Below are positions 8,884-34,434 of a stretch of DNA of 64,000 nucleotides, in pieces. Below the pieces are notes generated by a model. The model did not search any database. It was given only the letters and a program-made list of their open reading frames with translations, and was not told the origin of the DNA. This stretch comes from Amoeboaphelidium protococcarum X5 (lineage: Eukaryota; Fungi; Aphelidiomycota), in the NCBI GenBank assembly GCA_023515725.1, contig JALDTO010000154.1, positions 62,001 to 126,000 on the forward strand. Direction: 5' to 3'. The translations under genes and the position numbers were made by a program. The number at the start of each line of letters is the position of its first letter. The stretch's first letter is position 1.

Positions 8884-9426
8884 TTTCTATTAAAACTGAT
8901 ATATTGCTACTCTAAATAAGAGTTTTAATATACGCTCAAATGTGGTATAATGAAATGTCAGATACTACACACTAATTCGTACGTGACCAAATACGTAAAG
9001 AAGGAAAGAGAGAACTACTCGAACGAAACGCGTTCAATCTCATGCTTGTTTTTCGACCTGTCGTCTACCGGGTAACTGTAATCGTGTGAGAGTGCTAAAT
9101 TCAGCGCCGAGAGAAAGCGCTTAGAGAAAGCAACGATGTATTGCAAGAGAGAAAGAGAGACAGAAATAGAGATAAAAGACTAAAAGCACAAGGACAAGAA
9201 ACGCGATATGAAACGTCACCACTAAGGATATTGAGTTGCATTAAAATGATATTATCGCGTCTATAAAGTGCAAATGAATAATGTGTTGTTTCAGCTCCTT
9301 ATACTGAAGAAAGAAGACAGGGGGACTGGTGTTTAAACAAAATTTAAAGGTATTAAGACTTTATATCTAACAGCCTACCCGATTTAGTGCAGATATTCTT
9401 CATTATACTCTTTTTGTCACTTCAAC

Positions 9427-11313
9427 TCAATTGGAACCACTATTCCAAAACTTTAAGCGCTACAAAGCCAGCGCGATGGAACGGCGCCAAGATCTCTTCT
9501 TATCCAACGTCATATACCAAGGATGGTGAGCTTTGTAGGAGGAGAGTATGGCTTCTTATTTAGCAGAAAGATCTCTATGCTTACGCAGCAATGCAAAAAG
9601 ACGGTACCACCGATTTTGAAGGCAAGTTTCCAACAGAGGTATGGGATCGACCAATTGATAACCTTGTTTGAATAGTTTCTACAACTTGACAAAATCAACC
9701 GCACCACCCTCCTTTTTATTGCGCGCAATCTCCAGCAGGACAATGTCATCAATAGGTAATAGCTTGCTCTACAGTTGGTCGACTTGATTCTACAATTCGT
9801 TCAACTTTAGAGAATCTCTACCAAGATCAGCGAGCCTGTTCTGATAGTCTCTGTGTCTGGCTTGATCATTGCGGCACTATTGGATGTACATATGCTGCCT
9901 CATAAAGTCATCTTTCAATAGATCAACTTAAGGATATGTACTAACTTATTAAAGTACCATGTCTGCAAAACGATCAGCACCGGGGAGTGTTGATGACATG
10001 CTCAATACAAATCTCAACATCTCTTTCACCATACGAGGGAGTAATACCTGCTTTTACAAAGCTAAATTGCTATTTTACACCTCTAGCAATAGGCCTCTCA
10101 TCCCTTTAACCAAGTCTGTATTTATGCCAAATGAACCAGCGAAAATTACTTTATACATTGGATTGTAAACGCTTTTACCATCCAAAAACTACGCGACAGT
10201 CAGCGGACCACTATGAGATGGGACTTTACTGATGACAGGTACAGGCTTCTGTAGACACATGTTCACATCTTCTAATTGGAAGAACATAGATACACGTCCT
10301 ATCACCTTGAAAACATTTTCGCCACCAAACTTGAAATAGTGAGCCTTGGCAAGTACTGCCAGATATCCCCACGGTTGGAATCTTTCATCTCCAATCATGA
10401 GACCATTCTCAATTAAACTTGACACAAAGTCAGCGCGTCCTGAAGATTTGGAGTACAGGTGCTCTTGAAAAATTTCATTTAGCTCGGTCCCTCCAGCCAT
10501 GTCCATAGCCTGACGCGTCACTTCATCTAAGAATTTCCCCTAGTTACTTTGATACTATGCCAATAACTTGAAGCCATCTGCAAACAGTTGTACCAGCTTC
10601 TACAAGACTTTATCATCCACAGGCCACGACTCTTGTTACACTCTCGCCTCAAAGAGTCCAAAACCAAACGCAATGACATGGGCAGATACAGAATCATACT
10701 TGCCACGACACATGAGTAGAGACCATACTAGCAACTGGCGCAGATTCTCATCTTCAAACTCGAGCAGACGCGAAACCAACTCGACCTACTGCATATAAAC
10801 TGGCGTCAGCATTCTAGACGATACAACTCCCACAGGATCAGGCTGATCAATAGCATTCAGCTCTTTCACAGTAAACAGAGGGAACTGACGTTATAGCGCC
10901 ATGTATCTGCACACGGAGGAATAATCGTTGCATGTACGAATTATATCGGTGATCGAGTCCTTGGCAGCCCACAGATCCAGATATACCTGCTCATAGTTTT
11001 AGGGGAAGACAGGCTTTTTTTGCGATAGTTCTTCAGAAGTCTTAGGCACAGCTATATAAGATTCAAAAATCTGTTTAATCTTCTCTTACGCATCAGGCGA
11101 TAGGAGTTTCACAAACGATAGTTTATATTAAATAGCAGGATTCCACTCACTGCCTAATGAGAGTTGATCCAAAGCATTCAAATCATTCAGCTATGCAGCA
11201 CGCGAGATGGCAAATTGATATGGATATCCATAATACAGGTTAGATATGAAAGTATTAGCATGCACAGCATAGTGCTGCAACACCACGAAAACAGTCAAAA
11301 AGGAGATCCACAT
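9427..11313 (-). CDS. Secreted protein family A, copy A1 (628 aa, unknown function)
   Basis: Signal-peptide-like MWISFLTVFVVLQHYAVHA. Shares YPYQFA, QVELVSRL, CRGKYDSVSAHVIAFG and HHPWYM..KRSWRRSIALALQRLKFW with A2 and A3. Confidence 0.85.
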
Positions 11314-11435
11314 TACTTTGCTGAATGACATGTCCTATAAACACCAATAAGATGGATGGATAGATATATAGACAGACAGACAGACAAAGTGATCTTCAGT
11401 AGATCGACCGACAATTATCGCTGACCAACCTAAAA

Positions 11436-11470
11436 GTGGCGTATCGTGGCAAAATTAGTCCTGCGCCACA
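11436..11470. promoter_or_regulatory. Inverted-repeat motif in the A1/B1 divergent promoter
   Basis: GTGGCG (11436-11441), 22-nt spacer, CGCCAC within CTGCGCCACA (11461-11470). The same motif occurs in the other two A/B intergenic regions. Confidence 0.65.
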
Positions 11471-11591
11471 TTGATCTGATTATAACCCATCGGTCGTTGC
11501 TGTAAGATCTTGAAATCCGTGAAATCTTATTCCTAGTACATACATATCAGAGTTTGTACGCAGGTAAAAGACTGATAAAGATAGAACCATC

Positions 11592-13556
11592 ATGAATCTG
11601 AGAATTGTTTTATCGCTATTAACATTTATAGTTGCAATCTCTGCTATGGTACCCCAAAGCGCGCAGTTCTCTGGCCGCTAAGATATTGGTGTTGGTACAG
11701 ATGATCAATTAGATGGCTCATCTACTAATGTCGCTCAGTCTTAACGTCCGTCATATAAGGTGCGATGCTCTTTGAGTGCTGGGCTTGAAAGACTCACTCG
11801 CTACTATGCATCATAGGGAGATCTTGAATCGTTTGCCACGTCCTTGGCTCCGTCCTCTAAGTTGGCATGGTATTATGCTGATGCTTTTGGTTTGCTAGAT
11901 CACAAGATGAAGATGAATCTGCTTGATGAAGGTTAGTTCTCCTTGAACCTGGAGGATAGTGAGGTACTTGGTGTTGCCGAGTCTGTTGCGTACGCGAAAC
12001 AATAGCTTGGTGACCCAATGAGACCTTTGATTGGAGCTGATATTCACAAGATTATCTTTTCTAAAAATACAGAGCAGCTGGTAGCTTTAGTCATTTACAT
12101 TGTCGCTGAGTAGCTTGAACTCTTTCCTATGTTCTATGAATCAATGTCTTTATATCATTTTAATCGTGAGATTCTTCGAGATTATGATTCTACTGAAAGC
12201 ATTCAGCTGGATGATCGCTTGCTGACTGGGCTGGTTGCTGTCACGGTCCTTTTGTTAAATGAGTGTCATTATCAATTTCTATAGTGGGTCTTTGATGTGA
12301 TCTAGTTGGGAACCAAATAGCTGGAGTATGCACGCGTTTGCTAGCGTCAGATGTTGCAAGATTCTAGTGATATGAGGGATATTTGTATAACAATCTCTCA
12401 TTTAATATAACGTTAGTCTCTTGAACAAATAAGGATTAGATAAAAAAAGTTCTTATAGTATTAACCCCGAGTGTAAGCAATTGCTGCATAGTTTAGATAT
12501 TATACAGAGTAGAGCGAAATGAAGACTTCCATGGATACAGTACTGGTCACAGTGATGTAATCTCAAGCCAAGGATCGGAACATTAAAGAAAGATAATTAC
12601 TTATTTGGATGATGAATGGTGTCAAAAACTCTTTCAATGATCACATTGAGGCTGATACTAATCTAGGTGCCGATTTGGAGGCATTGGAGAACTTTTTCTC
12701 GATTTATGCCGACTTTTGGAATTTAATTAACGTCCCAAAGGCAGGGCAAGTCCCATTGACTCTGTAGAGGATCTTGTAGTTAGAGAAGTTTGATGAGAGT
12801 AAGCCGTACTACTCGATGTTGCTGTTGGGCCTTTAGCACAAATTTGTCAACTAAATTGTCCCTCCTGTGTCCCGTACTTACCAAAGCGAGTTCAATTTCA
12901 CCCTTTTGAAAATACTAATGAAGTTCTTCTCTGCTTACTGGAATGCAGTGTCAACTAACGATGTAAAGGAATTCTCTGAGTTGTCTTTAATTACGAAGTT
13001 GATACCATTAGAAAATGACAATATTTTACTTGGCCCTGATCAGCTGACTAGTTTGGAGACCGTCATTGGTGAAAACGTTCAGCCGCTCTAGTATCCGAAT
13101 CTTTACCGGAAGTTCAGCTTGTCGCGCCTTGTAATGTACATTGCCACTAGACAGGAGGCTACTGTTGAGACTCTGATGGGTGTTTTGTTGTTTTGCGTAC
13201 AGTATGACATATAGGATGGTATTGATAAATTTACTGGGTTGATAGAGAAGGCGACTGGCTAATCTTTGGATTCTGTAATATTATCGCCATCTGTAGATTC
13301 TAGTATTGAGTCATCATAAGTGAAAACTACCCGCTCTTGGTTAAAGCCTTTTGGATTGTTGAAGGCTGATTTGCCGGTCGCCAGTAGTGAGCGCGTCGAT
13401 TCCGGCCCATTTGACCAATTGAAGGCTTATGGTTCTCTGAGCAAATTCTATGAAAGTTATAAGACAGCAAACGAATAGAAGCAAGATACTGAAGTGGAAT
13501 CCGCGGCACAAGTATAGTAATTGCGCGACGCTGATAAATTTGATTAGACAAAGTGA
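11592..13556 (+). CDS. Secreted protein family B, copy B1 (654 aa, unknown function)
   Basis: Signal-peptide-like MNLRIVLSLLTFIVAISA. Shares SKLAWYYADAFG, ADIHKIIF, VIYIVAEQ and TVETLMGVLLFCVQYDI with B2 and B3. Confidence 0.85.
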
Positions 13557-13880
13557 TCAAGTGACGGCTCTATTTTGATATTCTTGACGCCTAATACAAT
13601 ACTATAAGTAATCATTAGTCTGTTGTCATTTCTTTCACTTGTGTTAGTTTAAGGGATAAAGCAGTTTAATCAATTGGCAATCTCTCTGGTTTGACATCGC
13701 AGACAAGTTATGATGTAAAACTCTTCAAAATTTTCAAAAAGAAACCTGCCACAAATCGACACCCATCAAACTTAAATACGAACTATGAGTGGAGAATAAC
13801 TTTCAGTGTATTGTCTCGTTTCATAGATATACCTTTAAGTGGTTGATATCCCACCTTTAACACCAATATCCGGCGCCAGA

Positions 13881-15821
13881 TCAATTGTAGAAAGTTTTCC
13901 AATGTCTCAATCTCTGTAGCGCAACAGCAATAGAGCGTCTCCAAGACTTCTACTTGTGAAGAGCCATATACCAAGGATGATGGTTGCTGTAATTTGACAA
14001 CTCAAACTCACTTTTCCCATCTAAATCACTAAAGCGACGCAACAATGAGTACAAACGATACCAACGGTTCTCTAAGCAAGTCTTTAACAAAGGCAGAGGA
14101 TTCTGCAGAGGATACCCCAAGTCGATTAACAGCTTATGCAGTAGAGGAAAGTCAAAAGAGACTGCATTCTAGTGATGCAAAACGCGTCTCATCTCATAGG
14201 TCACGACGTCATCTAAACTGATCCTCTTGTTATTTAGCAATTTGATCACAAAATTTACGTCTCTCAGCCTTTCAGTCACATCTTTAATTCTCATTATCTG
14301 CGCAAAATATTGCTACTCTACAGGCAGCAGACCGACACATTTTTTGATATGCTCCCTCTCCTGATTGTACTCGGCTAGGAGAACTTGCGCCTGTTCCCCG
14401 ATACTTAAGTTGATCAAACCGGAAATCTATTCAGCATAGTCTTGACACTTTCTGTCAGGTGTTATATATAATGAGAAAGACAAAAGCATTCTGACTACCC
14501 TCTGTGTAATGACGAAACTACTGACTCCAGCGTTGATTGTCTAGGCATAATCGAGAAGTTAAACCACGCCTTCTTACAATCGCTCAATTTTTGCCAACGA
14601 TCTGGCAAAAAGCAATCTACCATTAAGATCCGCATCTTTATCTGGAGTCTAGCGCACATCTCTATTAGGCTTCAGGGCATCTGGACGTCTTTGTGCGCTG
14701 TTCTTCACGAGACATTAGTTAACATCCTGAAGACTCAAGAATTTCCAGATACGCGCAACCATCGCTCTAAATTAGGATTCCTCCAATAGGTATTGAGCTG
14801 ATACTAGCACAGAAAGATAATTCCATGGCTGAAATGGCCCCGCAGATACTACTTCTTCGCCACTGTCTTGCAACTTCACAACCTCAAAACTATCATCACT
14901 CTCCTTCTTATGGCGAACATCAGCCTTCAATTTAAACACCTCTTCGTGTAATTAGTCATCAATATAAACTCCCCCAGCCATGGTCAATGCTTGGCTAATC
15001 AACGTGTTCTAAAACGTGTAGGTATCGCTCTCACTTCTGGACAGTAACTTGAATCCCTTGGCGAGCAGAGACACCAGACTTTCCAACTATTCAAGTGTCG
15101 GCCTTCTCTCTAGCTCGTATTGATGAAGACCAAAAGCAATTACGTGCGCATTGACATCATCGAACTCACCTCTACATTTGAGCAAAGCCCATACGAAAAG
15201 ATCTTGTAGCCGATGGTCTTTCACACGCGTCAACTAAGACACTAGCTCCACCTGCTACTAGTAAACTGGTGGTAATAATTTCGTATTCAACAGCGCACCT
15301 TCACTCGGCTCCACATTAAAGCTGCGATACTCACCCATAACGCTCAACTCAAATAGAGGAAACTCATTATTGAGTACCATGTATCTGCACACCTCAGGAT
15401 AAGAATTGCATTTGTCGACCATTAACTCTACCGTAGTAGCCTCATACCAAATCTATAAATACACGTCTTTATAATCATCTGGAAACTTTGGCCTGACCAA
15501 TAGCCTACCCGCAGAGTTGCCATAACTTCCACTCTCAGGATCTTAATCAGCAGCGGATCCAAGCAAATCTAAAACGCGATTTTTAGCAGACTTGGAGAAG
15601 AACTTGTTACCAACAAATCGGAATTTCAGCGTTGGATCCCATTCGTAGTTGTTGTAAAGATTATCAAGAGCCTTTAAATCGTTATCCGCACCAGCGCGAG
15701 ATACCGCGAATTCGTAAGGATAAGCACGGTAAACGTCTAACAGGAGTGCGTCATGATTGGACACTGCCTCTGCAGGTATCAATGCGATAGCTAACAAGGT
15801 AGCGAAAATGCAAACTTTCAT
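13881..15821 (-). CDS. Secreted protein family A, copy A2 (646 aa)
   Basis: MKVCIFATLLAIALIPAEA signal; YPYEFA; QVELVSQL; CRGEFDDVNAHVIAFG; HPWYMALHKQKSWRRSIAVALQRLRHWKTFYN-TGA. Confidence 0.85.
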
Positions 15822-15911
15822 ATGCGATTTCTGATATTCCAACTAGACAGCAATGAACGAGTGAAAGGTCGACTACCAGACCCAAATTCCATGGCACGTC
15901 AATGCACTAAA

Positions 15912-15945
15912 TGTGGCGCATTTTGATTAAGGTTTCTGCGCCACA
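15912..15945. promoter_or_regulatory. Inverted-repeat motif in the A2/B2 divergent promoter
   Basis: Perfect 9-bp inverted repeat TGTGGCGCA-N16-TGCGCCACA in the middle of a 203-bp intergenic region. Confidence 0.7.
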
Positions 15946-16024
15946 CTTTGATAACGACTCCATTATTTGTTCACCTATTCAATTGCATCAACGATAAACT
16001 TGGGAATAAAACATTGAAAGTGAT

Positions 16025-17986
16025 ATGTAGTTCTTATATTTACTATTGCTATCAGCTTCCTTGGTGATAGATGGTGCTGTCATTGAAAGACAGTAAAGTG
16101 TGCATGTAAAGTCGCCATCCCTCCATCCCGAAACTGCGGAAGATCGGCAAAGCGAATCCGTAGATCAGCGCTGTTCTCGTTTTCAGTCAGTTGGCTTATG
16201 GTAGCAGATAAAGTCTCTGGGTGCAGTTGGTCCTTAATAATGGCCTGAGAATGATTTTCCCCTTCTTCAGAGAGCGTCTAAGCTGGCATGGCATTATGGA
16301 AGATACTATGGTGTTGCTGTTGATGAGTTCAACAGCGCTCTTGCTGAGGATCCGTTAAGATTATCCCTGCATATTAAAGGAGGTGGCAACGAAGAGTCGC
16401 ATGAATCACTGCAATATGCAAAGAGTCTATTGAATGCTCAGACTCCTTTAAATCAAGCTGATGTCAGTAAGGTATTTTTTTAAAGAGACAGTACATTGAT
16501 AGCCGCCACGCTGATAGTTCTTGTTCACGAATAACCCAGCCTATTGCCCAAGTTCCAGGAGCGTCTGTTGGAAAATAGACCTATTGAGAGTTCGGACCCT
16601 GAGTTAACATCTTCCGGCTTGGACGAAAGTTTATTCACTGGACTAGTTACTTCATCGTTGGCTATTACAGACGAGTGCGATAATTAGCTCGGCCCGAATC
16701 TTTTGACTGACTTGGTGGAGATTACTTAGCAATTTGATATATACTATCTATGTCATCGCAAGTTATCTTTTAACGATGAAGCTTAGCGCCGAGAATTGTG
16801 TTACAGTCTTTTCAATGGCATCGTCAATTAATAGCTGGCAGATGCAGCGATGGATGAAGATAAAGCTTTGGATTTGGCTTTTGATTTGGGTAAATAATTG
16901 CGTTTTGTAACCTCTGATACAGAAATGACTCAGTTTTATGAAAGAATTCATCGTCAATTGGCTGAGCACCTTCGTTTATAGGATGCTTCGTCTAGAGTCT
17001 CCATAAGGATCTTGCAGGGATTTATAGAATCGTTTAGTACCCGGTTTGATTTGAACTTCATAAAAGAAGATTATAAAGCCATGAATATTATGCTGTACCT
17101 TCCGGTGGAAATTGGCAGTCTGGCAAGTATCTTGAGGCCTGAGTTTTACAGAGGAAGTCTTTACTTTGACATGCTATGGATCAGCGTGTGTCGGCGCGAA
17201 GTATAATCTGCACCAGAGAATGAATAACAGTTAATTAGACAAGTGAAGAGCCAGTTTTGGTCCATATTTGCGAATTATTTGGCTGCGTATTGGAGTGCAG
17301 TGCAATCGGGCGATATGGAATCTCTGAAAATACTCTAAGCGCTCACACTGGTGGTGCCATTGAAGAATGAAAATGTTCCCTATAAGTGGTATTCCGAGTA
17401 TATGAGTCGTACACCCGCTTCCACGTAGGTTATTCCACCAAAAAATGATAAAGCTGCCAAAACAGCATTTATGAAAATCAAATCTGAGTTTGCCGAGAAT
17501 TCTTTGGATTCGGATGATAAAGTAGATCGAAAACACCATGAGTTTAGCATAGAAGGATTGATTTTGGTATTGGCTTTACCACGCGTCTACAGAATTAGTA
17601 CCGAGAGTTTAATGGGCGCTTTGACATTTTGCATTGAATTCGGTCTGGAATCTGCTACATAATAGATTATGTCTAAACTTTTAAAATAACTCCATTAGCC
17701 AGACATTGTTTCTGGCGAAGAACCCCGGCTCACCTCTGCTCTTGGTTTACATCGGATGGTTGTGCCTGAATCTGCCACTGCTCGATTCAATAGAAAATTT
17801 CTGAACGTGTTCCGACCTGCATCAAGGGTGATTTCAGATGGGTAAGTAGAAAAGCGAGAAGTTAGGCGTTCATAAATTCATCAGCTGATGAAATAAGCTT
17901 ATGAGGCAAAGGGGCGTGACTTGAAACTGTACGTTCGCGCTGCTCAGATTGTTTACTTGAGAGGACCCGTTGAGTTTGAGTTTTGA
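16025..17986 (+). CDS. Secreted protein family B, copy B2 (653 aa)
   Basis: MQFLYLLLLSASLVIDG signal; SKLAWHYGRYYG; ADVSKVFF; EQPSLLPKFQERLL; STESLMGALTFCIEFGL. Confidence 0.85.
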
Positions 17987-18259
17987 TTGATTTCCATACT
18001 AGAGAGCCGTACCTGATTATCTCCATAGTTTATTTGGCAACTACAATACATGAAATTTAGTAATAATTATTCTTTTTTTTATATTTTATCGTATATTTTA
18101 CTAAAATCGGATTACTTACTACTGTATTCGCTATACGATTTTATCGAGACGCGCTATACTTGAGAAGCGCTTTCTAGCCATTCGCTTTTTTGAAACAATC
18201 ACTGTGCTTTGTTAGGAGGTGTTAGGAAATCTTATTTCACGCAAACAAGTATACTTCAA

Positions 18260-19555
18260 ATGTCCTGGATATAAGCTATTGCTGAGTTTAATAATTCACA
18301 CGGCACATAAGATGAGTCTGCCGCTGAAGACCGCCAACATTTATAGCCGCTATAGAGTCACACTCAGTCCAACCGAAATGTCGATCCGAACATACAGAAA
18401 GCTGTACAAAAAGCTGTACACTCCCTAGTCATTGAGTAGAAGAATGCATCCACGCTGAGCAATGAAGATTTGGATCAGATCAGCGAAATGCTTAAAGAGG
18501 TGGCTGTTGATGGAGATTACATTAGCTATCACAATTTCAAGCTTATTGGTCAGTCGCTGCCAAAGTTCTAATCATACTTCACACCGTCAGTGTTCGTGCG
18601 TTTTAAAATGAATGAGAATGGCCACATCAGTTCCGGTCAGCTGTACAATTTCATAGTAAGAAGAGCCTCGCTGTGTCAGGAGAGAGTCTGTATCAGCATG
18701 TATGATCAAGATGGTGATGGAATGCTTACTCTTGATGAATTTGAGTAGTACCTGGCGGATCTGATTCCAACATTTCCGTAATTATAATAAATGGATCAAG
18801 ATTTCAAGCCTTTCTACTTGTGCAGTGCTGTCCGTAAATTTTACTTCAACTTGCATTATAGTCGGCCCATTGTTGGTAGGTAGCAAGATTAGCGCAACTG
18901 CATAAAGATTACTGATATTCTACTGAGTCCCATTCTGAGCGAGTTCTTTGAGTTGTAACAACCTGAAGTTGATGGTAAACTGCTGAGTACCAATTGGTTC
19001 TCGTTGTAAAGTGCATTGAAGGTTTACAGCTGGTTTGTTGAACTCGATCAGGATCATAATGGTATGCTATCGCGATCGGAATTGTATCAATTTGCCAAGG
19101 GGAGATACACCAATGAGTTTATTGATCGAATTTATCAAGAGTACCTGTCGTTTAATGGCGAACTTGATTACAAGTCGTATCTCGATTTTGTGCTCGCTGC
19201 CAATGATGTTCACACTAAAGAGTCTATGCGCTATATGTTCACGCTGCTGGACATTCGACGACAAGGATTTCTGGACTGGTTCACGTTGCACTTCTTTATG
19301 AAGGCACAGGTGGATAAGATATCTCAGATGCCTTAGAACAGATCTTTTGTACAATCGTTCAACATGAATGATATGATTACAGAGCTGTTTGATATGGCCA
19401 AGGCATCATAGCGCATTAATGGCACACAATAATAATCTACTGGAATTATTGGGTAAATACGATTGAATGATCTGATCAATTGTGGTGTCGGAGGTACAGT
19501 GATCAGTCTCCTTATTGACACGCAGGCCTTGTTACAGAACCAATTTAAAGATTGA
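18260..19555 (+). CDS. PPP2R3C: PP2A regulatory subunit B'' gamma-like EF-hand protein (431 aa)
   Basis: EF-hands YDQDGDGMLT and LDQDHNGMLSRSEL; FYLCSAVRKFYFNL; NWFSLQSALKVY; LINCGVGGTVISLLID. Confidence 0.85.
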
Positions 19556-19832
19556 CGATTTACAGATAATGTTGATAATACTGAATCATATGTCTTTTCA
19601 TATATATATTTTGTTTTAGAATTGATATTTAGACCGCATAGTCTCGTACTATTGATTTATCTCTAAAAGCCTATACATGCACAAGCTAGGTACCCACAGC
19701 TTTAAGTTAAAGACGCTAAGAACTTTGAAATGCAGAGAACGACGCGTTTCTTCTCTCTTTCTCCGTTCATTTATTTACTCACTCACCTCAATAACGTACA
19801 TAGTGAAAGGCATTTGTATAATACTGTAAGCG

Positions 19833-21827
19833 ATGTCTGGTAAGCCAAAGTTAAAATTTAAATTTAAATCCTCTCTCCCACAGACTGTTAATGCAGGAGA
19901 AGCATCGCCACTCGTGTAATCACCAAAGCCGTCTCAAGATTTGGTAAAGTCGCAGAGTGATCCTCATGGTAATAGTTCAGGGAGTTAGACTACGCAACAG
20001 TAATAGTAATCTCTGCCCAAAATATCATTTAAGTTTCCGTCATCATCATAATAATAATAATCTCAGATCAAGAAGGAAATATAACAAGACGCTGATAATT
20101 CCGGTTCATCTCTCACATTATAGACAGCAAACATGGCTGCGGTGTCTTCAACGGTGGAATAGTCTCCTTTGAGGTAGCAGTAGTCATAGAGTTAAATACC
20201 GGAATAGATTAATAGTCCCACGCCTAGTTAGACTTCTCTTAAACTAAAGTTTAAACCGAAAGTATCGCTTAATGAAGGTGGTAGTAGTGGTGAGAATAGA
20301 GTTAGAATTCATGAGTAATAGCAGCATCAGCCTGGGCTGAGCAGATCTTAATCTATGGTTTCCATTGCCAGTCGAAAATCATCAATTGCGTCTGCCAGTA
20401 AGAAATAGAAAGTGAAGCCACCTAGAATTCCAGATTCTGATGAAGATGAGACTCTAAATCCGGTGGAGGAGCAATTGATATTCAGGTTACCCCGATATGA
20501 AGCTGCGGATGTTAGGAATCTACCCACTGGTTCTTATGCCCAGAAAATAGTTGAAGCTACCAACAAGATCAAGTAGATGATAAAGACGCGTTCTGTAGAT
20601 ATCAAGACGTGCCTCAAGATTGAATTCAAGGATTAGCGTAGAGTTTTGCTCACTTACAATTAATAATCTGAAGATGGCGGCGACAATGATAATATCCAAT
20701 ACTCAGTATAAATGTGCGGCAAACTCGTCGACTTGCCTTGTATTATTGAGGCTCAGCGATCTTTTGACAGGCGATAATTTCACAAGATTTCTGATATATG
20801 TCAGATGATACAGGTGGAGAAATTGGACTTTGGCCGAGTTGGTGTGTCGCAAGGTTCAATTGAAAACTACCTTAATCAGTATTTTGCCTAGTCTACTCAG
20901 GGCGCATTCTAGTCATCTCTAAATGAAGATTACATTTCCAACTCTGGAATTACACCTCCACTTAAGCACTGTAGAGTGAGACGATTCAGAAAACGGGTGA
21001 ACAGGCGAACTGTGGAGAGTATCGAGCGTGAAGTGGCAAGGCTGTTGAAGGAGGACGCGCAATCGCTTGAAGTTGTGGGATCTTTTATTGATGCCAGAGA
21101 GGTGGAGGAGCGTCTGATGCGAGATGCTGATAACGATAATGATGAGTAGACTCAGGGTGATGGTGAGACTGAGGGTGCCGGAGGTACTGCGGAAGTTAAT
21201 GAAGATGGCGAGGCTGTTGTCGATGAAGACGATGATGAAGATGACCAGATTACCGTGAGTGAACACCCAGGAACTAATAAGGATGGTAAAACGGAACAGA
21301 CTTCAGACGATGATGATGAGGAGGAGGAAGAAGAAGAAGATTATGGAGGTGATGGTAAAGTTGCGAATGGCCAGTTGGGTGATGGAGCGAAAGGCGATGG
21401 CGCAGCATCTGATGCTTAGAAAGATGGCGATCAGATGGCTGAAGGTGAAGAAGTAGATGATGCGTTGGATATTGAGAATGAGCCAGATCCTGAACTGAGA
21501 TCACTGTTGTAACAGAATAAGCTGTTGAATGAAGAAATGGCTGATCTCAATTAGAAGTTGGATTAAAAGACTGCGTAGAAATAGGCTGCTGGTAATCCTA
21601 TCATAATCAAGAGATTTGATGATATTATCATTCGATTAAAAGATGAGGTTGAGAAGAAAAAATAGAGTCTCGCTGCAGTTTAACGGTCAATAGTTGAGAA
21701 GAGATAGAGTATTGCCGACGATGAAGATGACATGGATGACGCAATGGATTTGAATGAAGAAGATGAAGGTGATGCTGGTGAAGTTTAAGAAGTTGGTGCT
21801 ACTCAACAACAGTTAACTGTAGAGTGA
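19833..21827 (+). CDS. TAF7: TFIID subunit TAF7 (664 aa)
   Basis: VEEQLIFRLP, AKLVDLPCIIEAQRS..HKISDICQMI, SGITPPLKHCRVRRFRKR, an acidic region and a C-terminal coiled coil with NPIIIKRF. Confidence 0.9.
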
Positions 21828-22116
21828 TTATCAATCATAGCCGTGGCAATATAGAGTATACGGCTTACTTATTGAATTCCGCCGCTCGTTATCATTTGCT
21901 AGTTCATATGTTTATAGTCTTGGTATGTCTTTGAATTTGGGCCATCTTATAGATGGACCTACTATGAAAGAGCAAATTTTAATGAGAAAATTGTGTTAAC
22001 TACATTTAACTGGGCAAGCTCATATCAATAAGTGACTGCTACTTAGTATATAAAATAGACTTTATTTTCTTCAGTTCTACATGCCACTGACTTGGACATT
22101 AGTATAATTCATAAGC

Positions 22117-23952
22117 TCACTTTGATAGATTGTACGAGTCAAATACTGATCCTCTGGCGCGCACAGTCTACGCAGCTTTAAAGAAGTGATCAGCCATCTT
22201 TTGGTTATCATTTTACTGCGAAAACATCATCAACTAATGAATCTGAGCCCTTCTCTTGTTCGGATCATCATTTACTCCCTCAGGATAGACCCAATTCTAA
22301 GGCAAAAATACGTTATTTAAGCCCCTGCGCCACCATTCACCAGTGGATTCAGCCTCAGTGTAACCAGACAAGTCCGGTAAATTAGTAGGCTAAACTTCTT
22401 CTCCCTACTCTTCGTCAGCTCCTGATTGCTATAACTTTTATAAAGCCACCTTTGCGACTTCAGTTATATCCTTCAGGTCGTGCTCAATAGAAAAAGTCAA
22501 CGCGCCCATCAGTGAATCCAGACTCAATTGCTACCCAACCAAACTCAACTTCAATAGCTTCGCAATGCTCCACTTAGACTCAGGAGCTCCATCAGTATCC
22601 GACTCTAACGCTTTAACTACATTAATCTCGTCTTCCACCGGAACCAAATCTGGTAGTACACCTAGCACCCTATAAGTAGCTTAATCATCGGACTAAATAG
22701 CTGTCCAGTAAGCAGACAAATATTCAGCAAATTTTTATACTACACCGGATTCAAGCTCGTATTAAGCAGCAGGAGTTAATGACAAGCTGTCCAGTCTCTA
22801 AACATGATATACAAACCAGAGTACGCCAAAGTATGTTTTGACACTAATTTGACTTGCTCTACTCTAAAATTTCCACTATTGTTAACCATTTAGAGCTTAA
22901 CTCAGATGATCTAAAGAAGCCAAATCCGCTTTAACATACTGTGGCTCAAAGGATTTTTCAAAAGACTGCATAAATCCTTCCAATACCATGTCAAAGGCCT
23001 ACTCCTAAACAGCTCTAACATTATGGTCGCGATGAGGATGTCCAACCACTATTGATAAGGCATTTTACACATAATCCGAATCGCCCATGTACCTTATCTA
23101 CGCACCAAAGGCCTCCCTGGCAGCACCAAGATCCATCTGAGACATTGAGCCGGAATGCTTAAAGACTTAACGTGTGAAATAGCCAAACAAATCAGCACAG
23201 ATAGATGATTCTGAAGGCCCAGTACGACCAAGTAGATTGTAGCGATTACATACGCGCATTATTTCAAGTGACTGAAGGCCAGGCAGCAGAAGCGGCATCA
23301 AATCTCTACCAAGCTGCGTCTCACATTCATAAACCAACACTACGGACACAGCGGCCAAGCCCACCAACAGTTATTCATCTAGATTAGTACTAAGACCCGC
23401 TTAAGATGGCAGACGGTTCTACTAACTCATTTGCAGTAATCGTTCTTTATAAGCAGGCAATAGACTTGGCTGTCGCGCAACGATATAAATGATCAACTCA
23501 GCCAGCTCCGACGCGACACCGCGAAAGAACACCCGGCCTACATCAACCTCATCTATGGGAACCTTATAACTGTCAAATAAAGAGAACTTTTCCAAATCAT
23601 TCAAAACACTGTCAGTAAAATGCAGCCCAGCGTTTGGATTTTGAGATAGATACTCCTTCAAATCATGGGACAATCCTCCATAATAATCGGCATAGTATAA
23701 AACCAGATTAGACCTTTGACCAAGCTTTTTAGACAGAAAATCGCGATTCTTGTTAGCAGCAAAATACTTGACCACAGGCTCTATACCTGAATCTCCAAAT
23801 ACAGCACAACGATTTTCACTGATAACTGTAGATTAATCTACGCCAAGCTTTGCATCAATCAAGTTGGGTGCGGTGGGTTCATTGTGAGATCTAGGGACAG
23901 ATGAGACGCGTGTTACCAAAATAGCTGACAGTGCAAGGGCGGCAATCTTCAT
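22117..23952 (-). CDS. Secreted protein family B, copy B3 (611 aa)
   Basis: MKIAALALSAILVTRVSS signal; SNLVLYYADYYG; VDVGRVFF; IIYIVARQPSLLPAYKERLL; SLDSLMGALTFSIEHDL. Confidence 0.85.
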
Positions 23953-24077
23953 TGCGAATTCAGTTCCTAAGCAAGACGTATCCTTGTAATCGCTTACTCC
24001 CACGAACACAGTAAGTGGGTCCTGAAAGAGAGTCTGAACAAGGAGTTGCACTAATAAGTTGCCGCCTTTGTTGTTGT

Positions 24078-24116
24078 AATTGTGGCGTTGACCGAGTTCT
24101 AGACTGCGCCACAATT
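24078..24116. promoter_or_regulatory. Inverted-repeat motif in the B3/A3 divergent promoter
   Basis: Perfect 10-bp inverted repeat AATTGTGGCG-N19-CGCCACAATT; includes CTGCGCCACA. Confidence 0.7.
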
Positions 24117-24232
24117 CGCCCAGATTAGCCATTACTATGATGTTCTCATATCTGGGTTGATCAATCTTATCCCTTGAAAGTTTTCAATTATTGGCGTAAT
24201 TCTGCTATTAATCCTGTAGTTTATTCGTTAAG

Positions 24233-26134
24233 ATGTAGTGGAGTTCATTATCTATCACAGTGGCTCTGGCGGCATGTCAGGTGGTGCGATCAACGGTTGC
24301 ATCTGACGCGTTCTTACCAAGCCTTTACAATGGTTATCCGTATGAGTTTGCAATTATCAATGCAGCTAGATAGGAAGACACCAATGCACTCCAAGCTCTG
24401 TATGCTGGATATGAGTGGGAACCTAAGGACAAGTTTCAGGGTGTCAATGTCGACTATTTTACCCCTCAGGTTCGTTAGCTCTTGTCGTCTGGTGCATCTA
24501 ATGTCCGCTACAGTCCTTTGGGTACAACGCGTTAATACTTGCCTGCTGACTATTAGGAGGTGTATCTGCAGCTTTATGGTGAAAGTCAAACTGTCGCTTC
24601 CATGATCTCCATCTGTAATAGTAACGCTGCGGCATGCAGATACATGGTGTTGAATCGCGAGTTTCCCGTATTTTAGTAGAAGCTTCTCGGTCTGACAGAG
24701 GACGAGCAAATGAGAATGACAACTCTGTTCGAAAGTACTGATGAGTTCAGTGACCGGTCGTTTAGACCGATTTATCAGATGCAGATTGAGTTGGTGTCGC
24801 GCCTTCTAGAGGTGAATGATCAGGAGTTACGCGATTTGTTCGTATGGGCTCTGTTGAACTGTCGCGGTGGTTATGACGGTGTGACTGCTCATGTTATTGC
24901 CTTTGGCCTTGGGTACTTTGAGGCCAAGAATCCGTACAATGAAGAAAAGTATAGAAGACTAATTGGATTACTGGCATCTGGGTATAGGTACCTGGCTGAC
25001 GCGTTATAAGATCCTATTCAGTTTCAATACAGTTTGACCAAGTATGCCATTGATATGGCTGGAGGTGCGAAAGTGAATCGCGCCATTAAAGAGGAGACTT
25101 ATAGAAAGGTCTCGCATCGTAAAGGCCTTCAGTTGAGCCTTTCGGACAATGGAGACTGGATTTCACCTCCCAAGTTTTAGCCATGGGGATATCTGGCAGT
25201 ATTGGTGACTGCCGAGTATGAGATGTAGGATGCGGAGATGTGGCTTTTGCTGTTTGGCCGTATTTCAAAGTTTTTGTGCACCTCTGAAGCTAATGATTGT
25301 CTCTTCTAATAGCACTTGGCTGAATCTTCTCGTGGTCGTGATTCTGTGTCATCTGTTGGTAATTATCTTAATGGCTGGTACAACAAATACTCGAGCATGA
25401 GACTGGCGCTAGCTCTTTCTTTGGCTAGATCTCCTAAGCTGTATGATTATGTTGATTTGGTAATCAATCACGGTCTACATATCAAGGCAGGACTAGAAAG
25501 CTCTAGTATAATGCAAAGAATAGCCAAGATCTTGCTGAGATTTAGCTTGTCCATTGCTTTGGATTAGTCTTCCAATGCAATTTCCACTAGAATATCTAGG
25601 CAAGTTAAGCAAGGATTTGTTGAGAAGACTGATATTATTCAGTTATTGATTGAATTCAACGAGTAGTTCTAATTGATCTCCGGTCGTATTGGTGAGGTTT
25701 CGCAATCGGTGATCTATCAGAATTTGATCTTAAATGAAGAGGTAAATCGGATCAAGCTGAGAGATGTTAATGTCGTCATTGGTCTGTTAAAAAGCTAAAG
25801 CGTCACGTTGGACGATATTGTCTAGTATGAGATGGCGCGCGTTAAGAAGGAGCGTGGATCATTTGATTTCGCCTTGTTGACCATCTTGTTCAGAAAGGGG
25901 TTCCAATTGACAAAGCCTGTGGAGTTGATGGAGGAATGCTTGCATAATGGATGGTATAGACTGTTCTCACTATTGCGCTAGAATAGCAGACTGAATCATC
26001 ATGAAGTTTAGTAGTTGGTGAATCTCAGTGAGCATCATCCATGGTTTATGGCCCTTCATAAGGAGAAATCTTGGAGGCGTTCTATTGCCATGGCATTATA
26101 AAGATTGAGACATTGGAACAGTTTTTATAACTGA
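24233..26134 (+). CDS. Secreted protein family A, copy A3 (633 aa)
   Basis: MQWSSLSITVALAACQVVRS signal; YPYEFA; QIELVSRL; CRGGYDGVTAHVIAFG; HHPWFMALHKEKSWRRSIAMALQRLRHWNSFYN-TGA. Confidence 0.85.
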
Positions 26135-26356
26135 TTAAATTTTTGAAGGGGATAAAGTAATCCGACAATATATATATCTACAGTATATACTTCAATAAAT
26201 CGCATCAGGTTGCGTCTTTATTTTGATTCAAAAAGTTTTGTCTAAACATCGTTGTGCGTTAAGACAAACGCGTTGCGTTAATGCTGTACTGACTGCTCAT
26301 ACTATACGTGTAAAACAGGCAACCGAGCCAAAAATATGCTCCACCACCAAAAAGGA

Positions 26357-26437
26357 TGCATTCTGTGAGACTCGAACTCACGCCCCTTGCGGGATTCGAA
26401 CTTGAGTCGAACTGAATGGCCACTATCAGAAGAATGC
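26357..26437 (-). tRNA. tRNA-Leu(CAA)
   Basis: Acceptor stem GCATTCT/AGAATGC, anticodon arm TTCGA-CTCAAGT-TCGAA, long variable arm CCC-GCAA-GGG, T arm GTGAG-TTCGAGT-CTCAC, and a downstream T5 Pol III terminator. Confidence 0.88.
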
Positions 26438-26610
26438 CTTTTCCTATTTTTTGGATGAAAACTAATTGATTTGGCAACTATAAAGTGCAACTATACAATA
26501 GCACACCAGTTTATGTATAATCATTTGAAAGAGACTTAGCAATACCGTTTGAAAATAACACGAACTTATACAAAAATTCAAATTTTTATTGAAAATTTAC
26601 ACGATTGCAA

Positions 26611-28455
26611 TCATAGCTTGTACTATTTACACAGAATATAGGTGAGAGCACAGACAATCAGGGATCCAAATATTTGACCAATTTGCGCGCCAACAGAGTC
26701 AGTCTAGTAGAATCTCATGCCAGTGTATCCGAAATTGGAAACAGTCCACGAAGGCTTAGATGGATCAACGACAGTGAATCGCCCACGCCCAGCATCATAC
26801 TCTAAGCCCGTACCATAGGCGGGGTGGAAATACGAAGATGTAAGAGTACACACCTTGTTGATACACAACTCGCTTTTACTCAGATCACAGTCTCCATCCA
26901 ACGCGCAAGTCTAATTTCCAGCAGAAGTCTGCACATAATCACCCAAAATACTTCGAAGCAGAAACAAATCAACAGTCCGTGAAGAGAAATAGCTACCAAC
27001 AGAGCGATCAATTGATACTGGAGAGGAGTAATTCAAGTACTACGTCGCAAGTGTACAATTAAAATTCCCTAGCATACATTCACTCAACTAAGACAAAACG
27101 GTACAGTTTGCAGATATTGTAGAATTACTCACGTCAGTAGCAACTTTATATACAGCGCGGGCAACAGAAGTGGAAATTTGACAAATGGAATCCAGCTGAG
27201 ATTAAGCTAATAAACGATCATTTTAGCTAAAGAAGTTCTAATCAATAAATTAAGAGTCGAAGTCGGATATTATAGCACTTTTTATGGTCGAATTATATTC
27301 CAAAAATGCCGCGACAGATGAAGGAGGCAACTACTAGCTTGAGGCCAACTTGGCCGTGATATTTAATCCAGAGGCACCAGAAAGTATGGCATCAACCAAC
27401 TCTGAAGCATTTCCAGTTGAACGAACATAATACGATCCATTGGTTGTAGCTGAGATCTATCGAAGACTAAATATTGCGGACACTTTAGACAAGTCAATCT
27501 TGGAATATTAGTCGACATTTCTATAGGGCAGCTGACAAATTGGATTATCATCTCTGTTCTAGACACAAAACTTGGACGACACATCTTGTATAAATCGCCT
27601 ACTACCAGTTAAATCGTAAGATTCGGCATTAAAAAGAGCATAAAGGATGTTTGTAGAACTTATGTTGAAGCTAGACAAAGCCTAAGACACTCCAACTAAA
27701 GCCAATATGCTTGAAGTGTAAGCATTCGCACCATACGCCATGCCATCAAAAAGCGATCGAGAGTCAAGCGGTGCAGTAACAATAATAGTCTGCGCATCGA
27801 GAGAGAAGTTTTTATGAGCAATTATAGATTGAGATCCCAATGGGAAACAGAAAGCTTGAGGCTGAGATTCGGTCCGGCGTAGACAAGTTGCAGAGTTATG
27901 TGCGGCAAACATAAAAGCCTCCATCTCAACTCCCACTTTAGGATATCTTCCCGCTCTATTATGCTAATCGCCGGCGATTATTTACTGTATTAGTTTGGAA
28001 CTGTTGGCATTGACTCCAAACAGAGGTTTATTCAACTGCACATCCAATAAGCTTCTGCCATTCGTATTCCATACATAATCTGTATTGAGCTGAGGAGATT
28101 AAACACACTCAGCACAGGGACTAGCATCGCTGTAAATAGATGATGGATCCTGACTTGCACTAACATTACCATTGGAATAAACGACAATCATACCAGCAAC
28201 ATTAGCTTACGAGTCCAGATCGTAGAGCATTTATCGCTGCAAAAAGGAAGAGTTCAAAGCTACAACCAGACTCTCAATGCTATCAATACCAGAGCCACTA
28301 CGTAGCGACTCATACTCTTCTATAGATGAGATGAATCGCAGCGAACCCGATGCTCTTCCACCTGCACTGCCAGTCTACCCACTTGAATTTAGTTTACGGA
28401 TCGCTGGCTGCGCAGAAGTGAAATACCTATAAATGCTCTGGTCAATGTCCTACAT
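26611..28455 (-). CDS. NCSTN: Nicastrin (gamma-secretase subunit); 5' end uncertain
   Basis: IIVTAPLDSRSLFDGMAYGAN, LYALFNAESYDLTGSRRFIQD, YFHPAY...SWTVSNF..MRFY, then one C-terminal TM helix. The first in-frame ATG gives no signal peptide, so an upstream exon is likely. Confidence 0.8.
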
Positions 28456-32826: not shown

Positions 32827-34434
32827 ATGAGTTTTAATTTCAATGTGAATACTCCTTAGTAGAACAAGTCTGATTAGTCACAGTAATAGTAGTAGTAGAA
32901 GCCAGCGTTCTCATTTGGTTCTGGATTTGGATAAGCGGCGTCAACTTAGTCAGCGGATTAAAGCAGTGCCAAGCCGTAATTTTCATTCGGAGGTGCATCT
33001 TCTACTCCAGCCCAAAGTGGTACTTAGCCTCAGAATTAGCCAAGTTTTAGCTTTGGTGGATTTGGCTCTACTCCTACTCCGGCCGGTGCCCCTTCTAGTA
33101 ATACTACTGCGACTGCTACTGCTGCCACGTAGAAGCCTACTTTTGGATTTGGATAATCGCTCGGTACACCTTCTGATAAATAAATTCCGTTATCTACTCC
33201 ATTTGGTACACCTGCTGTTGCATCCACGTCTGCTTAGCCGTAATAAAATGCCAGTAGTGCTAAACCGGCATTTTCTTTTGGTGGTGGTCTCTCTGCAGCT
33301 ACCCAGCCGCAATCCGATTAATAATAACAACAAGAGTAAAAGCCTGCTGCGGCGTTTGGTGGATTTGGTGCAACTACAACTGAAGGTGTGAAGACTTAAT
33401 AGGCGCCACTTTTTGGCCAGACTTTAGGTGGTGGCGCTACTGGCGATAATAAATAGGATGCTTCTAAACCGCAATTTAATTTTGGCGCACAGTCAACTAC
33501 TGCAGCGGCGCCTACATCTACTCCTAAGCCAGTGGAAGAAAAAAAGGGACCAACTCCAGCATTTTCATTTGGAGCAGGAAATGCGGCTGCTGGTACTCCT
33601 GCAAAACCGCCTGCCGATAGCGGCGATAAGAGTAAAGATTCTTCCCAAGCATCCAAGTTGATGATCGGTGGGCCTGCTTAAGAGGAGAAAGTGGAGTCCG
33701 CTGATGTTCTTACTGCTCTTAAAGGCAAGACTATTAGCGAAATCTTATCAGAGTGGTAGAGAATTCTTTACGAATCTAGCAAGACTTTCCATCAGAGAGC
33801 GTAAGAGATTTCATAACTCGATGCCCAGCTAGTAAATGTAACCAATCAGATTAGCAAAGTAGTCATGGAATCTGAGCAATCTAATTAGAAGTAGCAAGAG
33901 CTTATTCAAGGTCTAGACTTTATAGAGACGCAACAGAATGCTTTGGATAAAGAATTGGATCGCTTCGAGGAGAAATTGGTTCAAGTGGTAGAGAAGACAT
34001 CATAACACTAAGGTTCCGCCGTGTAAGGTCGCGTTGTCTAGTTTAAACTTCCTAATGGTCATATTGTTAATGGTGATACCGCCCGTGAAAAGACTTATAC
34101 CACCGCCGAGAATTTAAGTTAGGATTTGTTCGTGATCAATCAGCAGATTGAAGATGCTGTGAGTATGTTGAACAAGGTGTATGCAAGCGGATCCGGCACG
34201 TCAGATGATGATACTGGCAGCGGGCAGGATGTAATTGGCGTAGTTACCAAGGTGCTGAATAAACATTATAACAGTCTGCAGTGGATTGATGCCACCGTCG
34301 GCCAGTTGAATGATAAGCTCTCGAAACTGAAGAAGATTAATGATGGTACCAAGCTGCTGTAAAGCAAAGACGATTCGCGCGATCGACATTTCTCACCAAG
34401 ATCATCTTCTATGCCGAAACAGTACTCTGCGTGA
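32827..34434 (+). CDS. NSP1: FG nucleoporin Nsp1/Nup62 (535 aa)
   Basis: Repeated P(A/Q)FSFG and FGFG motifs, followed by the Nsp1_C coiled coil starting LKGKTISEILSEW. Confidence 0.9.

Follow-up and report, generated by a model that had tools for sequence, protein, structure and literature searches.

A conserved inverted repeat midway between divergent genes of the aphelid Amoeboaphelidium protococcarum, probably a cis-regulatory element of three bidirectional promoters

Bidirectional promoters in which two divergent genes share upstream activating sequences (UAS) are familiar from fungi, examples being GAL1-GAL10 with its Gal4 sites, the divergent histone gene pairs and niiA-niaD. Here we describe a comparable arrangement in Amoeboaphelidium protococcarum X5, an algal parasitoid and a nuisance in algal mass culture, which belongs to the aphelids, the sister lineage of Fungi. 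In a 64,000-nucleotide stretch of contig JALDTO010000154.1 (assembly GCA_023515725.1, positions 62,001 to 126,000; hereafter the window) three pairs of divergent genes, each consisting of a member of family A and a member of family B, are separated by short spacers that carry an inverted repeat, GTGGCG-N19-22-CGCCAC, at their centre. The arrangement shares with the fungal promoters a short conserved element placed centrally between divergent, functionally linked genes and kept when the pair was duplicated. It differs in that the A/B sequence bears no relation to CGG-N11-CCG or the histone UAS, that the site is used nowhere else in the genome, and that the spacing of its arms is loose. The repeat has clearly been maintained by selection and is probably a cis-regulatory element of a bidirectional promoter, most likely a transcription-factor site. 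As such it is a new example of a familiar kind, and neither a new kind of biology nor the mark of an effector regulon.

Under the standard code the longest open frame in the window is 196 amino acids (aa), against frames of up to 1623 aa when TGA is the only stop. In A. protococcarum UAA and UAG have been reassigned to glutamine (PMC5304391), and with TAA and TAG read as sense codons and TGA as the sole stop a clean gene map of the window was obtained. It contains three head-to-head A/B cassettes (Table 1), the third of which is inverted relative to cassettes 1 and 2. The spacers between the divergent start codons measure 260 bp (11332-11591), 203 bp (15822-16024) and 280 bp (23953-24232). A preliminary description of this DNA had assigned the repeat to bidirectional promoters; this setting is right, but solely under the TGA-only code, in which the motif lies between divergent starts in three of three cases.

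The repeat has the form GTGGCG-N22-CGCCAC at 11436-11469 (pair 1), with an N20 version at 15913-15944 (pair 2) and an N19 version at 24082-24112 (pair 3). When both strands were searched these proved to be the only three matches to the paired motif in the window, where dinucleotide-preserving shuffles give a mean of 0.01 and never, in 100 shuffles, three or more. The exact 10-mer CTGCGCCACA is likewise found three times in the window, exclusively at these sites (expected 0.08). The arms of pair 1 are complementary over 6 bp only, while those of pair 2 extend to a perfect 9 bp and those of pair 3 to a perfect 10 bp (AATTGTGGCG with CGCCACAATT at 24107-24116). Beyond the motif, a search for shared words returned none of seven or more bases common to all three spacers, and the three non-motif 6-mers that they have in common are about the chance level. 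On all of these points, namely the coordinates, sequences and spacings of the three repeats, the shared 10-mer, the longer arms of pairs 2 and 3, and the otherwise unalignable spacers, the preliminary description was accurate. The centre of the motif lies 9, 5.5 and 4.5 bp from the spacer midpoint in cassettes 1, 2 and 3, hence always less than 10 bp away; the joint chance of such central placement in three spacers, calculated post hoc, is approximately 2e-4. A chance origin of the repeat is excluded.

The conservation of the arms was followed in 14 spacer copies, made up of two assemblies with two subgenomes and three pairs each, plus two contigs of a third strain. The sources are the window, its homeologous block on contig C162 (L006-L008), two subgenome contigs of a second assembly (GCA_023515745.1) and the two third-strain contigs. 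Both arms, GTGGCG and CTGCGCCACA, are unchanged in 14 of 14. The most informative comparison is that of spacer 1 with its C162 homeologue, which are 56% identical and separated by indels of 11, 16, 6 and 1 nt; all 16 arm positions are nonetheless identical (0.56^16, or approximately 1e-4). The best 30-nt windows of this spacer are 93% identical against 56% for the whole, and together they make up its most conserved block, which includes the right arm (Table 1). A third GTGGC core (11446-11450), present in pair 1 only, is also kept in every copy, whereas the base preceding it is C, A, T or G depending on the copy. Across the paralogous cassettes, whose proteins are 22-38% identical, the arms are the only common remainder. 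Their constancy, set against the drift of proteins and spacers, points to purifying selection on a cis-element of the ancestral cassette: no arm has changed in any of the 14 copies, yet the paralogous spacers can no longer be aligned and identity in one homeologous spacer has fallen to 56%.

The divergence between homeologues is uneven. Cassette 1 of C162 (G000:C162:272940-275974, L006; counterpart of 9427-13556 in the window) is approximately 72-75% identical to the three other genome copies in protein and 56% in the spacer, whereas cassettes 2 and 3 show approximately 85-97% protein and 93-95% spacer identity between genome copies. Two explanations can be offered: cassette 1 of C162 may be an allele that is old or introgressed, or homogenisation may have affected the other copies.

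Alignment of 24 half-sites in the same sense gives the consensus yT(G/A)CGCCACA-n-TT, or AAnTGTGGCG(C/T)A on the other strand, in which the T three bases outside the core is invariant (24/24). The perfect arms are extended inward in pair 2 and outward in pair 3, because both arms approximate one linear consensus of 10-12 bp; a selected stem would not give that result, whereas one longer consensus for both arms would be expected of two protein half-sites. The better-matching arm is the B-proximal one in pairs 1 and 2 and the A-proximal one in pair 3, and this switch implies an element without fixed polarity, functionally symmetric with respect to A/B identity. The arms are separated by N22, N23, N22 and N23 in the copies of pair 1, by N20, N19, N20 and N20 in those of pair 2, and by N19 in pair 3, except that in the third strain a 4-nt loop insertion brings pair 3 to N23 with both arms intact. 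With a spacing of N19-23 the arms remain close, but helical phasing is not kept. Such looseness argues against both a rigid symmetric dimer site and an RNA hairpin, and suggests that two molecules may bind side by side or as a flexibly linked dimer.

An inverted repeat might act instead as a nucleic-acid hairpin, whether as a DNA cruciform or as an RNA stem-loop belonging to a 5′ untranslated region (5′ UTR) or to a short non-coding RNA. The 43-47 nt segments do fold, to between -10 and -19 kcal/mol with z-scores of -1.3 to -5.8, but folding is expected of every inverted repeat. We regard a hairpin as improbable on several grounds. The arm cores never vary, so that there is no covariation and the pairing has not been tested by evolution; the stem is of unequal length (6, 9 and 10 bp) and grows in opposite directions in pairs 2 and 3; and the loop is free in length and sequence, to the point of tolerating the 4-nt insertion. 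No Rfam family was detected within 9000-27000 except for a tRNA elsewhere in that interval, and the element is central between divergent genes without a fixed distance from one ATG.

The preliminary description had gone on to suggest that the motif marks an effector regulon throughout the genome, and had proposed a genome scan for it. We scanned the 23.6-Mb assembly with five motif definitions, using reversed-sequence controls, and all five were negative for a regulon. For the strict paired motif 10 matches were obtained, and 5 for its control. The A/B spacers account for six of the 10, and the remaining four fall within open frames of 403-633 codons. There is thus no further intergenic pair in the assembly. 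The relaxed pair GTGGC-N10-35-GCGCCAC has 28 matches against 12, of which 10 are A/B and 18 non-A/B. Among the half-site words, TGCGCCACA occurs 132 times against 93 (8 A/B, and several more from one repeated coding element), TGCGCCACANTT occurs 10 times outside the A/B cassettes against 13, and AANTGTGGCG 153 times against 159. Sites of TGCGCCACA are not preferentially intergenic: 27 of 40 sampled sites fall in open frames of at least 200 codons, compared with 125 of 160 positions 350-700 bp away (Fisher p = 0.21; the two p values calculated for intergenic preference of the 40 sites are 0.21 and 0.46). Neither the strict nor the relaxed scan revealed a repeat family carrying the paired motif.

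A few single sites do stand upstream of genes, one of them at 118 bp from the ATG of a putative flavoprotein gene (L040) and another at 148 bp from a gene whose start is signal-peptide-like (L033), but these are not above chance. With no other intergenic pair in the assembly, and with half-sites at control frequency and not enriched outside open frames, the idea of a regulon of secreted or effector genes throughout the genome is contradicted for the motif as defined here and is very improbable. The motif is confined to the A/B cassettes. Of the earlier interpretation, the conserved central cis-element stands, with a shared transcription-factor site as its best reading, and the regulon-wide role does not.

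The same scans bear on another explanation, under which the repeat is two independent, direction-specific promoter elements, each serving its adjacent gene and reading CGCCACA-n-TT towards it at 80-130 bp from the ATG, with the inverted-repeat look arising from two such promoters placed back to back. Each arm does read the same way towards its nearer gene, the inter-arm spacing of N19-23 is loose, and the arm-to-ATG distances are roughly alike, at 104/122, 91/80 and 129/120 bp in cassettes 1, 2 and 3. We still hold this explanation to be unlikely, given that single half-sites are not enriched genome-wide and TGCGCCACA shows no preference for intergenic DNA, so that no single-arm promoter class is visible, and given that the distance between the arms has held to 19-23 bp while the rest of the spacer varied by tens of bp.

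We return to the shared cis-regulatory element as the best explanation. It consists of two opposed half-sites of approximately 10-12 bp, AAnTGTGGCG(C/T)A, with centres 25-29 bp apart, midway between the divergent A and B starts. It was already present in an ancestral A-spacer-B cassette, and selection has preserved it through two rounds of cassette duplication as the remainder of the spacer was randomised. A sequence-specific DNA-binding protein, for which a C2H2 zinc-finger protein is our best guess from the half-site, would occupy each arm separately or bind as a flexibly linked pair, and would turn on both flanking genes together, leading to co-regulation of all three cassettes. Single half-sites are no more frequent in the genome than chance predicts, so it is the pairing that would confer specificity, and the regulon would then comprise these cassettes alone. 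It is possible, though doubtful, that a lineage-specific factor uses the inverted pair as its dedicated operator and has no targets in the genome other than the three A/B cassettes (six with the homeologues). If so, a self-contained regulatory module would be travelling with a species-restricted two-protein secreted system, and its role might be to coordinate the diverged cassettes, or to select among them, while the algal host is being infected.

Three known classes of binding site were compared with the half-site. The site of the Saccharomyces cerevisiae C2H2 zinc-finger proteins Met31 and Met32 has the consensus AAACTGTGGC and a protein-binding microarray (PBM) motif TGTGGCG (PMC3350556). 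TGTGGCG is found in 21 of the 24 tabulated half-sites, namely in every right arm, in every left arm of pairs 2 and 3 and in the left arm of one pair-1 copy, and an A-rich flank precedes it. The other three half-sites read AGTGGCG; all are left arms of pair 1, of which four were aligned, and the copy from the third strain reads the same. None of the aligned A/B half-sites matches the full consensus AAACTGTGGC, and the element has no link to sulphur metabolism. The calcineurin-dependent response element of Crz1 (ScCrz1), another yeast C2H2 zinc-finger protein, is GNGGC(G/T)CA (PMC6942403), to which all right arms and both arms of pair 2, reading GTGGCGCA, are a perfect match. As for the E2F site, TTTSGCGC, the A/B sequence TGTGGCGC is one position off TTTGGCGC; however, GTGG is invariant in the A/B arms and degenerate in E2F sites, and the left arms of pairs 1 and 3 do not preserve the E2F core GCGC. 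A C2H2-type half-site is a lead from these comparisons, and not an assignment to a family.

Several observations weigh against a transcription-factor site of this kind. The resemblance to the yeast sites amounts to a match of 7-8 bp. In the case of Met31/32 the A-rich flank of the A/B half-site abuts TGTGGCG without an intervening C and is one base out of register, and in the case of Crz1 the consensus is violated by the left arm of pair 1 (GTGGCGTA) and by that of pair 3 (GTGGCGTT), although these arms are equally conserved. The variation of the arm spacing from N19 to N23, even between homeologues and strains, makes a rigid dimer binding both arms simultaneously unlikely. Spacers 2 and 3 are 93-95% identical throughout between genome copies and add little to the footprint. 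The arms could also lie in the 5′ UTR instead of upstream of the starts. Public sequencing runs that match the locus consist of contigs from a relative 95-99% similar and carry no transcript information; a Logan contig that crosses spacer 1 is genomic, because it spans the whole spacer from gene to gene.

Some public gene models run across the repeat. That of A1 is 704 aa long (P0008; window 9427-11541) and passes through the motif, as does that of B3 in one copy (671 aa; window 22117-24132), while another copy, from the second assembly, is modelled at 611 aa. Other copies of these genes have been modelled from the signal-peptide Met, at 634, 635 and 611 aa, and frame-shifting indels between copies break the extended A1 and B3 frames. 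Start calls based on the longest open reading frame over-extend when TGA is the only stop, a code under which spurious open frames of great length are to be expected. The 704-aa model of A1, as it runs on through the motif, is an artefact, and public gene models in a genome with TGA as its only stop can evidently run through real promoter elements.

These models are what could be said for regarding the repeat as a non-functional remnant, be it of coding sequence in an N-terminal extension or a product of chance, gene conversion or transposon terminal repeats. We find this scarcely credible. The window shuffles and the midpoint placement exclude chance, conversion tracts of 6-10 bp are too short to be plausible within spacers that cannot otherwise be aligned, the motif is carried by no repeat family, and the coding extensions are broken by the indels and absent from the copies modelled from the signal-peptide Met.

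Table 1. Genes of the A/B cassettes, arms of the inverted repeats and the conserved block of spacer 1 (window coordinates).
Feature	Position	Strand	Remarks
Gene A1, family A	9427..11331	-	634 aa, signal-peptide-like N-terminus
Gene B1, family B	11592..13556	+	654 aa
Gene A2, family A	13881..15821	-	646 aa
Gene B2, family B	16025..17986	+	653 aa
Gene B3, family B	22117..23952	-	611 aa from signal-peptide Met
Gene A3, family A	24233..26134	+	633 aa (P0010)
Pair 1 left arm, GTGGCG	11436..11441	no strand	A1-proximal; unchanged in 5/5 copies of spacer 1
Pair 1 third GTGGC element, GTGGCAAAA	11446..11454	+	10-11 bp from the left arm, of which it is a direct repeat
Pair 1 right arm, CTGCGCCACA	11461..11470	no strand	B1-proximal; unchanged in all copies
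Most conserved block of spacer 1 between homeologues	11459..11493	no strand	Right arm and approximately 25 bp to its right
Pair 2 left arm, TGTGGCGCA	15912..15920	no strand	A2-proximal
Pair 2 right arm, TGCGCCACA	15937..15945	no strand	B2-proximal; complementary to the left arm over a perfect 9 bp
Pair 3 left arm, AATTGTGGCG	24078..24087	no strand	B3-proximal
Pair 3 right arm, CTGCGCCACAATT	24104..24116	no strand	A3-proximal; final 10 bp complement the left arm

All six genes of the window encode proteins with a hydrophobic, signal-peptide-like N-terminus, and the paralogues are 34-38% identical in family A and 22-26% in family B. Protein queries were stop-free pieces, that is, pieces lacking TAA and TAG codons, and family B was searched as pieces. 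A six-frame search of the 23.6-Mb assembly with such pieces found exactly six loci of A and exactly six of B, three on the contig of the window and three in the syntenic homeologous block on C162. Since the families have no further copies, A/B spacers beyond those of the homeologues do not exist.

Ten stop-free pieces matched no Pfam family, and no Pfam domain was found in full-length database A proteins, for which two word-based searches gave matches solely from A. protococcarum. The N-terminal piece of A2 had no homologue. A 116-aa piece of A, compared with 1.84 billion representative proteins, matched only the paralogues of the species itself and spurious repeat proteins, and a scan of metagenome contigs found no relative of family A. 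An AlphaFold2 model of family A is all-helical and of mediocre confidence (predicted local distance difference test, pLDDT, 61). Compared with the PDB by Foldseek it gave generic helical-repeat matches only (template modelling score, TM, 0.1-0.2) and no specific fold. To judge from these searches, A and B are orphan families of predicted secreted proteins.

Our literature search yielded no work on cis-regulatory elements in aphelids. The A/B repeat offers a clean candidate element with evolutionary support and a defined target set, and a probe of 30-35 bp with which the regulator of a species-restricted pair of secreted proteins could be sought.

Three minor observations concern other occurrences of the arm words. 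A near-identical stretch of at least 70 bp containing TGTGGCGCAGCC is present in at least five places (L011, L020, L039, L042 and L046, at positions of approximately 1470-1540 in each), within open frames of 346-729 codons; it belongs to a multi-copy gene or mobile element and has inflated the genome count of the 9-mer. The everted words GCGCCAC ... GTGGCGC are found at 33403-33437 of the window, inside the coding region of an Nsp1-like nucleoporin, probably by chance. At L015 (G000:C57:128251) a copy of TGTGGCGCA is followed by ATGGTAGCG, which resembles a tRNA gene's D-arm; there is nothing tRNA-like about the A/B arms, in that no Rfam match covers them.

The region between cassettes 2 and 3 (18260-21827) holds a gene for an EF-hand protein and a TAFII55/TAF7 gene, and their order is likewise kept in both subgenomes of the second assembly. 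Just downstream of A3 lies a tRNA gene on the minus strand (26357-26437; Rfam, 45.6 bits).

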